This document shows, piece after piece, positions 4,024-15,212 of a DNA stretch of 64,000 nt. The first letter of the stretch is position 1; every line of letters begins with the position of its first letter. This stretch comes from Macrostomum lignano (lineage: Eukaryota), in assembly GCA_002269645.1 (NCBI GenBank), contig NIVC01001360.1:47237-111236 (forward strand), in the 5' to 3' direction. Under the pieces are notes generated by a model that was not told the origin of the DNA, searched no databases, and saw only the letters and a list, made by a program, of their open reading frames with translations. A program made the position numbers and the translations under genes.

Positions 4024-4186
4024 TCAGCCGGGTCACCACAGCCGGGTCACCACAGCCGGGTCACCACAGCCGGGTCACCACAGCCGGGTCACCACAGCCG
4101 GGTCACCACAGCCGGGTCACCACAGCCGGGTCACCACAGCCGGGTCACCACAGTCGGGTCACCACAGCCGGGTCACCACAGCCGGG
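4024..4186. repeat. 14-bp minisatellite (CCGGGTCACCACAG), ~11 copies
   Basis: Direct tandem copies. Confidence 0.92.
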
Positions 4187-7100
4187 TGTGGCTGTAGTGC
4201 CGCCGCAAGCCCTGCTGGTAGTCGTACGCTGCTGGCGGGAAGTAGCGCGACTTCATCGCCAGCTCCGGGCCGCCGCCGCCGCCGCCGCCGCCGCCGCCGC
4301 CGCCGCCACCGCCGTACAGGGCGGAATTGGCCAGGTTGGGGTTTGAGCGGGTGCGGGACAGCTGCTGCTGCTGCTGCTGCTGGTGCTGGTAGCTGGCGAG
4401 GCCTGGCAGGACGCCGAGCCCCACCGGCTCCGTTGGCGACTGGCGCTGCTGCCGCTGTTGCTGCCGGCTCAGTGATGGCGACCGCCCGAGGCTGCCGGTG
4501 TGCTGCGGCGACGCACGACGAGCAGCGAACGCAGCCTCCATCAGCTCCGCGTCGGAGGCTGCAGTGGGGAGGTCAAGGGTGAGCTCAATTAGTGCAGTTC
4601 GGCTGCAGGATCCTACTATCAGTAGAAATACGCGCATATTAAGTAAAATAATTTTGCCAGCGACAGTTACGAGTAATCCGTAGCCAGAGAGAACAAACAG
4701 TGTGCCTCATGTTATCCATGGCGTACACACAGTGTGCCTCATGTTATCCATGGTGTACACACAGTGTGCCTCATGTTATCCATGGTGTACACACAGTGTG
4801 CCTCATGTTATCCATGGCGTACACACAGTGTGCCTCATGTTATCCATGGTGTACACACAGTGTGCCTCATGTTATCCATGGCGTACACACAGTGTGCCTC
4901 ATGTTATCCATGGCGTACACACAGTGTGCCTCATGTTATCCATGGTGTACACACAGTGTGCCTCATGTTATCCATGGTGTACACACAGTGTGCCTCATGT
5001 TATCCATGGTGTACACACAGTGTGCCTCATGTTATCCATGGTGTACACACAGTGTGCCTCATGTTATCCATGGTGTACACACAGTGTGCCTCATGTTATC
5101 CAAGGTGTACACACAGTGTGCCTCATGTTATCCATGGTGTACACACAGTGTGCCTCATGTTATCCATGGTGTACACACAGTGTGCCTCATGTTATCCATG
5201 GTGTACACACAGTGTGCCTCATGTTATCCATGGTGTACACACAGTGTGCCTCATGTTATCCATGGTGTACACACAGTGTGCCTCATGTTATCCATGGTGT
5301 ACACACAGTGTGCCTCATGTTATCCATGGTGTACACACAGTGTGCCTCATGTTATCCATGGTGTACACACAGTGTGCCTCATGTTATCCATGGTGTACAC
5401 ACAGTGTGCCTCATGTTATCCATGGTGTACACACAGTGTGCCTCATGTTATCCATGGTGTACACACAGTGTGCCTCATGTTATCCATGGTGTACACACAG
5501 TGTGCCTCATGTTATCCATGGTGTACACACAGTGTGCCTCATGTTATCCATGGTGTACACACAGTGTGCCTCATGTTATCCATGGTGTACACACAGTGTG
5601 CCTCATGTTATCCATGTTCACACACTACTCAGTAGTAGCATCAGCGGTAGCACAGTCAGGTCGCGGAAACTCACGCAAGATTTCTTGTCGGTAAGGCGAA
5701 GCCGAGTGCCCGCCACCACCGACTGGCGGGGTGCCGCCCGTCCGCTGCGGCTGCTGCGGTGGCGGCTGCGGGGACGGAGGCGGGAGCCCCGCTGAGTGCC
5801 GACCGGCGCTGCTGGGCTGCTGCTGCCGCCTCGCCGATGAAGGCGCCTTCCGTGGCGTCTGTCTGGATGACTGAAAGTTGCAGCGGGGTTCCGGAATTTC
5901 CTGTGCGCTGGCTTTGGATTGAGGACCATGGCTTTGGATTGAGGACCATGGCTTTGGATTGAGGACCATGGCTTTGGATTGAGGACCATGGCTTTGGATT
6001 GAGGACCATGGCTTTGGATTGAAGACCACGGCTTTGGATTGAGGACCATGGCTTTGGATTGAGAACCATGGCTTTGGATTGAGGACCATGGCCTTGGATT
6101 GAGGACCATGGCTTTGGATTGAGGACCATGGCTTTGGATTGAGGACGATGGCTTTGGATTGAGGACCATGGCCTTGGATTGAGGACCGTGGCTTTGGATT
6201 GAGGACCATGGCTTTGGATTGAGGACCATGGCTTTGGATTGAGGACCATGGCTTTGGATTGAGGACCATGGCTTTGGATTGAGGACCATGGCTTTGGATT
6301 GAGGACCATGGCTTTGGATTGAGGACCATGGCCTTGGATTGAGGACCATGGCTTTGGATTGAGGACCATGGCTTTGGATTGAGGACCATGGCTTTGGATT
6401 GAGGACCATGGCTTTGGATTGAGGACCATGGCTTTGGATTGAGGACCATGGCTTTGGATTGAGGACCATGGCTTTGGATTGAGGACCATGGCTTTGGATT
6501 GAGGACCATGGCTTTGGATTGAGGACCATGGCTTTGGATTGAGGACCATGGCTTTGGATATCGGCGGGATTGAGGATCACAGGTTTTGGATTGAGGACCA
6601 CTGGATTTAGATTGAGGACTGCAGGATTTGGGTATGGGCAGGATTTTTAGCGTAATTTTCAGCGTATAGTGAGAAGCGTAATTTTTTAGCTTCTCACCCC
6701 AAACACGTACCAAACGCATACCAAACGCATACCAAACACATACCAAACACATACCAAACACGTACCAAACGCATACCAAACACATGCCAAACGCATACCA
6801 AACACATACCAAACACATACCAAACACATACCAAACACATACCAAACACATACCAAAGACATGCCAAACGCATACCAAACACATACCAAACACATACCAA
6901 ACGCATACCAAACACATACCAAACGCATACCAAACACATACCAAACACATACCAAACACATACCAAAGACATGCCAAACGCATACCAAACACATACCAAA
7001 CACATACCAAACACATACCAAACACATACCAAACACGTGCCAAACGCATACCAAGCACATACCAAACACATACCAAACACATACCAAACACATACCAAAC

Positions 7101-12985: not shown

Positions 12986-13244
12986 CGCGGTCTCAAAATG
13001 CTTTATTTTTTGCTTTTCTTTCTTTATGGGAAAAGCTAAAAATGTGTTTTAAAGATTAATTATTAAAAAAGACTGCAATTTCCTATAAAAATAATAGGAA
13101 ATAAACTGTCAAAAACCAAATTTACTTTCAATTCTCTTTGGTTTGAGAATTTGCGAATTTCTCAATGGGATGCTTTCTTATTCATTTGAGCTCCGAGAAG
13201 CCGAAGCGCAAGTAAGGAATCTAAAGAGAGCATTTTACACTCAC

Positions 13245-15212
13245 GTCTTTTTGTCGGCGACTGCGGATGCGCCGGCGGACGGCCCAGTCTGCCGCCGCTC
13301 CGACCGCGGACTGCCGCACCGGACTCTGCATGGGTGATCGGCGAGGTGCGTGCGGGTGGGTCACTTTTGCAAGCTTAACTGCCTCCCATCTCTTGCCTTG
13401 AACTCTTATCCACTTCAGTATCTTTTGTCCAAAAATCCGGCACACTGAATGGCTGAGGGACAGGGGATGGAGGACCGGAATGGCACACTGAATGACTGAG
13501 GGACAGGGGCTGGAGGACCGGAATGGCACACTGAATGGCTGAGGGACAGGGGCTGGAGGACCGGAATGGCGCACTGAATGACTGAGGGACAGGGGCTGGA
13601 GGACAGGAATGGCACACTGAATGGCTCAGACAGGGGCTGGAGGACAGGAATGGCACACTGAAAGACTGAGGGACAGGGACAGGAATGGCGCACTGAATGA
13701 CTGAGGGACAGGGGCTGGAGGACCGGAATGGCACACTGAATGACTGAGGGACAGGGGCTGGAGGACAGGAATGGCACACTGAATGGCTCAGACAGGGGCT
13801 GGAGGACAGGAATGGCGCACTGAATGACTGAGGGACAGGGGCTGGAGGACAGGAATGGCACACTGAATGGCTCAGACAGGGGCTGGAGGACCGGAATGGC
13901 AGAACGGTATTCCAATAGCCTGTGGATTGAGTTTTAAGAGTTCAACGTATTTTCTCCCTCCCGCTCTCACCGGGTCTGTCGCGGAAGAAGCCGTGGAACA
14001 CCACAAAATTGTTCATCTGCGGGATGCAGTCCTTCAGGCCGTAGTGCTTCTTGAGAAATCCAGCGAATTTCGGTGACGGCCTGTCGATGGCGAGGTGCAC
14101 CGGCTCCACCTGTTCCTGCTGCAGGTGAGATGGCAGGTTTCCCTGGACTTAGTCTTGAGTAACTGCCAGCACTAGCAATGGCTACCTACCTGTAACATGT
14201 ACTCAAATAGAACTTTTCCGTATCCGTGGCGTTGCCGGGACTCGTGAACGTAGAAGTCCAGGACGCAGAGCGGCTCCATCTCGTGCTGCTTTCCCAGCAT
14301 ATCGTAAACAAACAGCTTTTTGCGGCCCATCTTCAGGATGCCAACTACCGCGCCCTGCATGCTGGAAGGGTCCGCTTGAGTCTCTGTTATCCAGGCACTT
14401 GAAAAATTTAAAAATTCGAATGAAACTTTCAAGCACCAATATGCAGGAAAATTAGCAACGACTCACTTATTTGCAAAAGCATCCTTCAAGACGTACAGTC
14501 GATGATCTGAATATTGCAGGCGCTTGAAGCTGGTTATTGCATTTGGCAAGGCCTGGGCCTGTAGATATTTTTTTAGGATAAAATTAGCTGAAAGTTTCTA
14601 ATGAGGTAAGTTTAGAATATTGGTTCTCTAACTTACTTTTCCAGATGCGATTCCCATGTTGTCAATTACTTGCATTAGGTTGTTTCGATGCGAGTCATAG
14701 CTAAAAATTGGTTTATTATCATAATAGTTTATCATCAATGTTGGTTCAAAGCCAAAGGGTTGAAATGTCTGCTTTATTATGCTTTGTTTTACAAATTAGT
14801 GAGAAAATTTATTGTGACTATGTAATTTTTAAAGATCTCGCACTAATAATATCAAAGAAGCATTTATGCCAATGAGGCGCATGTTTAATCTTCTTGCAAT
14901 ACAATAATAATTACTTAAAACAACAAAGCGCATTTAACAACAGTTTACAAGAATCGATATACTATCTGATATTTTAGGTAAAAACTTTTACATGTATATT
15001 TATGGCGGCCATAAAAACTTCTACATTTTTAATACACTTGTAATCAACTATGTCACTGTGTTCAATTAAACAGAAAACTTCTACATTTGATCGCTGACAT
15101 TGAATTTTTTATTTTACCTAGAGCGTTGAAACTTTTGCAGATTGCTGAATGAACTGTCAATGATGGTTATTTCGTCAGACAGCAATGGATTTATGTTAAA
15201 CGTAAATTCCAT
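13245..15212 (-). CDS. ATAT1: Alpha-tubulin N-acetyltransferase 1 (MEC-17 family); complement(join(13245..13325,13971..14118,14190..14361,14467..14558,14637..14700,15118..15212)); 3' end unresolved
   Basis: [19 protein letters not shown] start; [14 protein letters not shown]; [14 protein letters not shown]; [20 protein letters not shown]; LAIDRPS; [13 protein letters not shown]. All match ATAT1, with Q58, C120 and D157 equivalents present. Phases are consistent. Confidence 0.95.
13440..13900. repeat. 41-43-bp minisatellite in ATAT1 intron 5
   Basis: Unit GGAATGGCACACTGAATGACTGAGGGACAGGGGCTGGAGGACC. Confidence 0.93.

Follow-up and report, generated by a model that had tools for sequence, protein, structure and literature searches.

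Passages in PMC3786989 and PMC13309782 describe the placement of one gene inside another as common in animals, and in the closest described systems, Drosophila tim2/2mit and mammalian H13/Mcts2, a complete and independently spliced guest gene sits within a single intron of its host. We find the same arrangement in a 64,000-nucleotide stretch of Macrostomum lignano DNA (assembly GCA_002269645.1, contig NIVC01001360.1; "the window" hereafter means this whole stretch), where the minus-strand gene for ATAT1, an alpha-tubulin N-acetyltransferase of the MEC-17 family, surrounds a plus-strand gene for an alpha-tubulin-like protein. As in those pairs, the tubulin-like guest is complete, independently spliced and confined to one host intron; as in other antisense host/nested pairs, host and guest lie on opposite strands, and the annotated coding exons of ATAT1 and the tubulin do not overlap. 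The M. lignano locus differs from the known pairs in that the host gene encodes an enzyme acting on the very protein family of which the guest is a member. We put at roughly 0.9 the probability that ATAT1 hosts the whole tubulin gene antisense in one 5.9-kb intron, and that additional ATAT1 exons proposed inside that intron by an earlier, sequence-only reading of the window are products of chance.

The exon structure of the host was established by comparison with a second copy of the locus, L001 (contig NIVC01001402.1 of the same assembly). Window and L001 align at 99.2-99.9% identity in the flanks and ~97% in the body, with unequal minisatellite copy numbers, and L001 is therefore the same locus in the form of another assembly, an allele or a recent duplicate. 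The gene table of L001 places ATAT1 at 10001-19485 (+) with a Tubulin/Tubulin_C gene inside it at 12319-16060 (-). Nine GT-AG exons of L001 reproduce exactly the GenBank ATAT1 model P0001 (PAA68339.1, BOX15_Mlig002856g1), and the tubulin coding sequence at 12319-16060 falls wholly within intron 6 of that model (L001 12053-17601), on the opposite strand. The nine homologous exons of the window encode a 424-aa protein in which 409 of the 415 residues of P0001 are identical, the differences being 6 substitutions and 9 extra residues in the Q and G runs of the window protein; the homologues of exons 7 to 9 have good splice sites and compatible phases. In the window, accordingly numbered, the tubulin coding sequence (8614-12985, +) again lies entirely inside ATAT1 intron 6 (13244-7356, -).

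Both ends of the predicted protein support assigning the minus-strand gene of the window to M. lignano ATAT1. Its N-terminal part matches PF05301 (Acetyltransf_16) over residues 9-186 (229.6 bits, E = 2.8e-68; curated cut-off 27), and the best protein matches outside Macrostomum are named ATAT1 proteins from many phyla at 45-58% identity. It shares with metazoan ATAT1/MEC-17 of Lingula, Owenia, oyster and scallop an MEFxF N-terminus, the PF05301 domain, RPPxHP after the domain and a long low-complexity tail with a terminal (R/K)HY(S/T)HTRLW, whereas the M. lignano tail is shorter and Q/G/P-rich. The catalytic domain is encoded by exons 1-6, and the low-complexity tail ending in RHYSHTRLW by exons 7-9. 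That exon 9 C-terminus is identical to those of Saccostrea and Argopecten ATAT1 (P0008, P0009) and nearly identical to those of P0004, P0006, P0007, P0014, P0055 and P0081; close variants occur in mussels, Lingula, a tube worm and nemerteans, and fishes end in NTRPW. In P0001 the conserved C-terminus (HY[ST]HT[RK]LW) is joined in frame to the catalytic domain. Because the exon at 4558-4173 encodes this family-conserved C-terminus, it is part of ATAT1 and not of an unrelated downstream gene. Membership of the family predicts that M. lignano ATAT1 acetylates K40 of alpha-tubulin.

The splice that spans the guest is the same in every coherent model. P0001 joins PQSPTKR at the end of exon 6 directly to PPSATLGDRKSLLP, continues with SSRQTPR and then enters the last exon, and this exon 6-exon 7 junction (SPTKR to PPSATLGDRKSLLP; 13245 to 7355) is common to P0001, P0121 and P0122. 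The last two are M. lignano ATAT1 entries in UniProt, separate from the GenBank model; the differing sequence of P0121 suggests that it represents another copy of the locus. They depart from the junctions of P0001 only where exons 4 and 8 begin, at other in-frame acceptors close by: an exon 4 acceptor upstream at 14397 adds 12 residues, as in P0122, and exon 8 has in-frame alternatives at 5858, used by P0122, and at 5900, which the sequence-only reading had chosen. Both ATAT1 and the nested tubulin are present in the Mlig_3_7 GenBank annotation, which derives from a genome-guided transcriptome of RNA sequencing (RNA-seq) assemblies (StringTie, TACO, TBONE) and not from ab initio prediction (PMC5730564), so both genes are presumably transcribed. 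A primary ATAT1 transcript would run antisense through the entire tubulin transcription unit, and the spliceosome would remove the region spanning the tubulin as one intron.

The guest is a real gene and, to judge from its predicted product, a strongly divergent, fast-evolving and lineage-restricted alpha-tubulin-like paralogue. Its four coding exons encode a 560-aa protein with matches to PF00091 (Tubulin, 174 bits) and PF03953 (Tubulin_C, 41.9 bits), and it is annotated as P0125 (BOX15_Mlig020438g1) at 99% identity and with the same exon junctions. All 60 of its best matches in the PDB are alpha-tubulins (E ~1e-94). With canonical alpha-tubulin (TUBA1B, PDB 3j8x chain A) it shares both tubulin domains, the GGGTGSG motif and a lysine at the K40 position, K41 in GRAGPWK aligning with K40 in GQMPSDK, and the alignment extends from near residue 4 to residue 429 with only alpha-tubulins as top matches. 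At the position which we take to be E254 in canonical numbering, the PDB alignment places an Asp in the nested protein. Identity to canonical alpha-tubulins is nevertheless only 38-40%, the only closer relatives being other M. lignano models, and where canonical alpha-tubulins are highly conserved and carry an acidic C-terminal tail with a terminal Tyr, the nested protein ends in a G/P/S-rich repeat closing with YYEE. The copy number of this repeat varies between locus copies: a coding minisatellite in exon 4 (12708-12968) specifies eight DGSGL units plus GPGxK/R repeats in the window protein, and the annotated P0125, 505 aa long, has roughly a single DGSGL unit.

Table 1. Positions of ATAT1, of the nested tubulin-like gene, of the segments proposed as further ATAT1 exons and of tandem-repeat arrays in the window
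Feature	Position	Strand	Remark
ATAT1 exon 1	15118-15212	-	ATG at 15212; identical in L001; part of the PF05301 match
ATAT1 exon 2	14637-14700	-	AG/GT bounded; 0 substitutions relative to L001
ATAT1 exon 3	14467-14558	-	rebuilt from the window; compared with L001
ATAT1 exon 4	14190-14361	-	acceptor 14361 as used in P0001
ATAT1 exon 5	13971-14118	-	acetyltransferase domain ends here
ATAT1 exon 6	13245-13325	-	phase-1 end at donor AGAC/gtgagt; one substitution relative to L001
TGA reached if the 13245 donor is unused	13162-13164	-	27 extra codons; AATAAA at 13007, same strand
ATAT1 intron 6	7356-13244	-	5889 nt; host intron, holding the whole tubulin gene and the four unsupported proposed exons
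ATAT1 exon 7	7315-7355	-	encodes (P)PSATLGDRKSLLP; one synonymous substitution relative to L001
ATAT1 exon 8	5675-5870	-	acceptor 5870 as in P0001; five substitutions and no indel relative to L001
ATAT1 exon 9	4173-4558	-	ends GLRRHYSHTRLW, then TGA 4175-4173; only 6- and 21-nt indels relative to L001
Proposed mini-exon 1, not an exon	10749-10782	-	intron adjoining the tubulin exon 3 acceptor; in L001 CAG is TGG, with a 1-nt insertion
Proposed mini-exon 2, unsupported	9766-9830	-	strong sites tactccacag/gtgagt; included alone gives an immediate stop (KRP, then stop)
Proposed mini-exon 3, not an exon	8753-8797	-	acceptor CAG is CAA in L001; 4 substitutions in 43 nt
Proposed 291-nt exon, not a conserved coding exon	8357-8647	-	open frame on the strand opposite the 5' end of the tubulin gene
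Tubulin coding exon 1 (MLGK)	8614-8625	+	matches the N-terminus of annotated P0125
Tubulin exon 2	9193-9701	+	GTPase domain, GGGTGSG motif, K41 aligned with alpha-tubulin K40
Tubulin exon 3	10793-11150	+	junction as in P0125
Tubulin exon 4	12182-12985	+	G/P/S-rich repetitive C-terminus (DGSGL x8); TGA 12983-12985
Repeat array	4693-5616		period 32 nt (11-62 copies across the eight arrays)
Repeat array	5909-6559		period 20 nt
Repeat array	6699-7272		period 11 nt
Repeat array	7635-8329		period 28 nt
Repeat array	8925-9173		period 4 nt
Repeat array	9845-10559		period 28/58 nt
Repeat array	11183-12032		period 33 nt
Repeat array	13439-13901		period 43 nt

The sequence-only reading had carried ATAT1 from exon 6 through seven further minus-strand segments, so that exons of the enzyme and of the tubulin would alternate. 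As a description of the letters it is accurate: exon 6 (13325-13245) does end at the phase-1 donor AGAC/gtgagt, reading through that donor does reach a TGA at 13164-13162, and each of the seven segments is preceded by AG and followed by GT in the phases given for it, except that the last ends at TGA. Tubulin introns 1 and 2 do contain the three mini-exons, the 291-nt segment (8647-8357) does overlap tubulin coding exon 1 (8614-8625), and the chain is free of stops whether exon 4 begins at the 14361 acceptor (1740 nt, 579 aa) or at the 14397 acceptor (1776 nt). Its inference that the tubulin gene is crossed antisense by ATAT1 is upheld, as nesting, by intron 6 of P0001 and by the conserved C-terminus; the alternation of exons falls, as none of P0001, P0121 and P0122 has an ATAT1 exon between tubulin exons. 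Only the final three segments (7355-7315, 5900/5870-5675 and 4558-4173) are real signal in that chain, and the other four, 10782-10749, 9830-9766, 8797-8753 and 8647-8357, are unsupported and absent from all three coherent ATAT1 models.

Comparison of the two locus copies separates these four segments from the annotated exons. The nine ATAT1 exons differ from L001 by 13 substitutions in 1275 nt with indels of 6 and 21 nt only, and the tubulin exons by 23 substitutions in 1386 nt with no indels, while unique pieces of intron accumulate 76 substitutions in 1127 nt and ~20 indels of all lengths. The acceptors of the first and third mini-exons are altered in L001 (Table 1), and the second keeps its acceptor there and has a rearranged 3' end. 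In the 291-nt segment, indels of 1, 2 and 3 nt in L001 shift the frame for ~180 nt and introduce two in-frame stops. This segment has no Pfam match, and protein searches found no homologue of it apart from P0002, a chimeric M. lignano model; a search with its peptide plus the tail returned P0001 and the frameshifted fragment P0124 only, and no independent tail-only protein. Its intermediate conservation fits its location, which covers the promoter and 5' end of the tubulin gene. We also considered a direct splice from 13245 to 8647, which would be in frame, the skipped mini-exons summing to 144 nt, and rejected it: the models skip the 291-nt segment, itself a multiple of three in length, and L001 is frameshifted there.

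An unbroken reading frame across the host intron is not in itself informative. For the 5889-nt interval 13244-7356 we counted the paths that lead from exon 6 to exon 7 through AG/GT-bounded, stop-free and phase-compatible exons, and compared the counts with those of block-shuffled controls. The real interval holds 794 one-exon paths (288-435 after shuffling), 8.0e5 two-exon paths (1.2-2.8e5), 4.8e8 three-exon paths (3.1-9.2e7) and 1.8e11 four-exon paths (0.5-2.0e10), so that shuffled counts come within about one order of magnitude of the real ones. Since stop-free chains are this abundant by chance, the proposed chain is not evidence for its own exons; hundreds to billions of such chains arise by chance across this GC-rich intron, and one more has no evidential weight. 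A single GTRAG donor in the interval, at 9766, can be matched to an acceptor to form a potential exon (9830-9766); restricting the count to strong sites leaves no complete path across the interval. The frame of the proposed chain is kept only when all three mini-exons are taken together (34 + 65 + 45 = 144 nt). As an isoform, the proposed chain was rejected on the protein models, the disrupted sites of the second copy and the chance counts. Collectively, these data indicate that the proposed extra exons are chance open AG/GT segments, the 291-nt segment being the opposite strand of the 5' region of the tubulin gene.

A protein search with the proposed chain returned two near-identical matches, both from M. 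lignano, the remaining matches being ATAT1 of other animals. Two older M. lignano models, P0002 (UniProt A0A1I8HE23) and P0150 (RepID A0A1I8JQ71_9...), are chimeric and translate the antisense of tubulin or ATAT1 exons, frame-shifted stretches included. These ML2-era UniProt models were discounted as support for antisense read-through on account of their chimeric make-up, and they could mislead searches for antisense coding.

Several points weigh against this simple nesting. The 13245-7355 junction rests on the annotation pipeline and the protein models. The 291-nt frame is open in the window, unlike in L001, and the window copy may have a specific isoform that includes it; P0002, messy as it is, includes the peptide of this segment. 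The untranslated regions (UTRs) of the two genes may also overlap at the exon level, although their annotated coding exons do not.

Among alternatives and additions to simple nesting, the one that survives best does not exclude it: a further, short ATAT1 isoform produced by retention of intron 6 or by intronic polyadenylation near 13.0 kb, which we consider unlikely while granting it some room. If the 13245 donor is left unused, the reading frame continues for just 27 codons, with an AATAAA 155 nt past the stop, and P0123, which ends in SPTKRR, hints at read-through; convergent tubulin transcription might promote such an isoform. Intronic polyadenylation driven by transcriptional interference is reported at another host/nested locus (PMC13309782), a precedent in favour of the idea. 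However, P0123 ends after a single extra residue and may be a truncated model, and the isoform is a prediction from sequence.

Considerably less probable is the proposal that the nesting is functional, that is, that tubulin transcription in intron 6 modulates ATAT1 or that co-expression couples the two genes in cis. Modulation would operate through transcriptional interference or through intronic polyadenylation yielding a tail-less enzyme; alternatively, one cell type would co-express a specialised tubulin and its modifying enzyme. Co-regulation or transcriptional interference, which the sequence-only reading had also raised, is in principle possible for any host/nested pair. In a weaker variant of this proposal, the window copy may express an isoform with the 291-nt segment, whose frame is open in that copy only.

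Less probable again is a division of the minus strand into two genes, a short ATAT1 ending at the TGA at 13164-13162 and a downstream gene running from an ATG at 8615-8613 (MSVRPS) to 4173, with P0001 a chimera of the two. Compatible with this division are the read-through stop with the AATAAA at 13007, the SPTKRR end of P0123 and the frame in the window, which stays open from the 8615 ATG on through exons 7-9. Against it, RHYSHTRLW, the C-terminus conserved in ATAT1, is encoded by the last exon; the splice from exon 6 to exon 7 is canonical, keeps the frame and occurs in three models; the 291-nt frame is broken in L001; and protein searches turned up nothing that begins with MSVRPS and extends into the tail. 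The ATG of the MSVRPS frame and the tubulin start (8614-8616, +) share a CATG palindrome at 8613-8616, an overlap that is probably a coincidence because the minus-strand frame is broken in L001.

Least probable of all is exon-by-exon interleaving, with ATAT1 coding exons in the tubulin introns or over tubulin exon 1: its chain is stop-free and phase-consistent, the sites of 9830-9766 (tactccacag, gtgagt) are good and in the window the 291-nt segment stays open for 97 codons, but the segments are missing from P0001, P0121 and P0122, diverge at an intron-like rate and in L001 have lost two acceptors and gained a frameshift with stops, very many stop-free chains are expected by chance, the three mini-exons are needed jointly for the frame with 9830-9766 alone giving an immediate stop, and the candidate exons, disrupted in the second copy, do no better than chance.

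Simple nesting of the tubulin gene in ATAT1 intron 6 was also set against the ATAT1 loci of other animals. At the two loci inspected, those of Lingula anatina and Owenia fusiformis, no gene lies inside ATAT1, and the nesting is therefore not ancestral to lophotrochozoans; we infer that it arose in the Macrostomum lineage. Both loci (Lingula, L002 1-4174; Owenia, L003 1-4623) carry a divergently oriented MMR_HSR1 GTPase gene directly upstream of ATAT1, a conserved microsynteny, whereas the 10 kb preceding ATAT1 in M. lignano L001 contain no called gene, this GTPase included. Also upstream of ATAT1, 3.8 kb at L001 1786-5607 is without counterpart at window 19612/19613; the two copies differ here by an insertion or deletion, which may be a mobile element.

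The locus is rich in tandem repeats. ATAT1 introns 4-8, five of the gene's eight, each hold long mini- or microsatellite sequence, intron 6 containing five arrays by itself, and each of the three introns of the tubulin gene does likewise (Table 1). A 14-nt tandem repeat at 4025-4187 (11.6 copies, 98% matches) starts inside the last ATAT1 codons; its unit, CCCGGCTGTGGTGA, spells (T)-R-L-W-stop, such that the C-terminal codons and the stop are copied ~11 times into the 3' UTR.

A host/nested arrangement is in itself ordinary, and both gene models are already in GenBank (PAA68339.1, BOX15_Mlig020438g1). Our literature search found no report of a host/guest pairing between an enzyme and its substrate family, nor of this gene pair, and searches on the gene identifiers and on Macrostomum together with ATAT1 returned nothing. 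The main value of the analysis is as a correction, which restores a normal host/nested gene pair where interleaved genes had been proposed. If the expression of the two genes were coupled, the locus would illustrate neatly how genes for an enzyme and its substrate can be linked in cis; no part of the analysis points to such coupling. What remains is a small curiosity: within the gene for the K40 acetyltransferase sits one for a lineage-specific, fast-evolving alpha-tubulin paralogue, which has retained the K40 lysine and is a candidate substrate of ATAT1.

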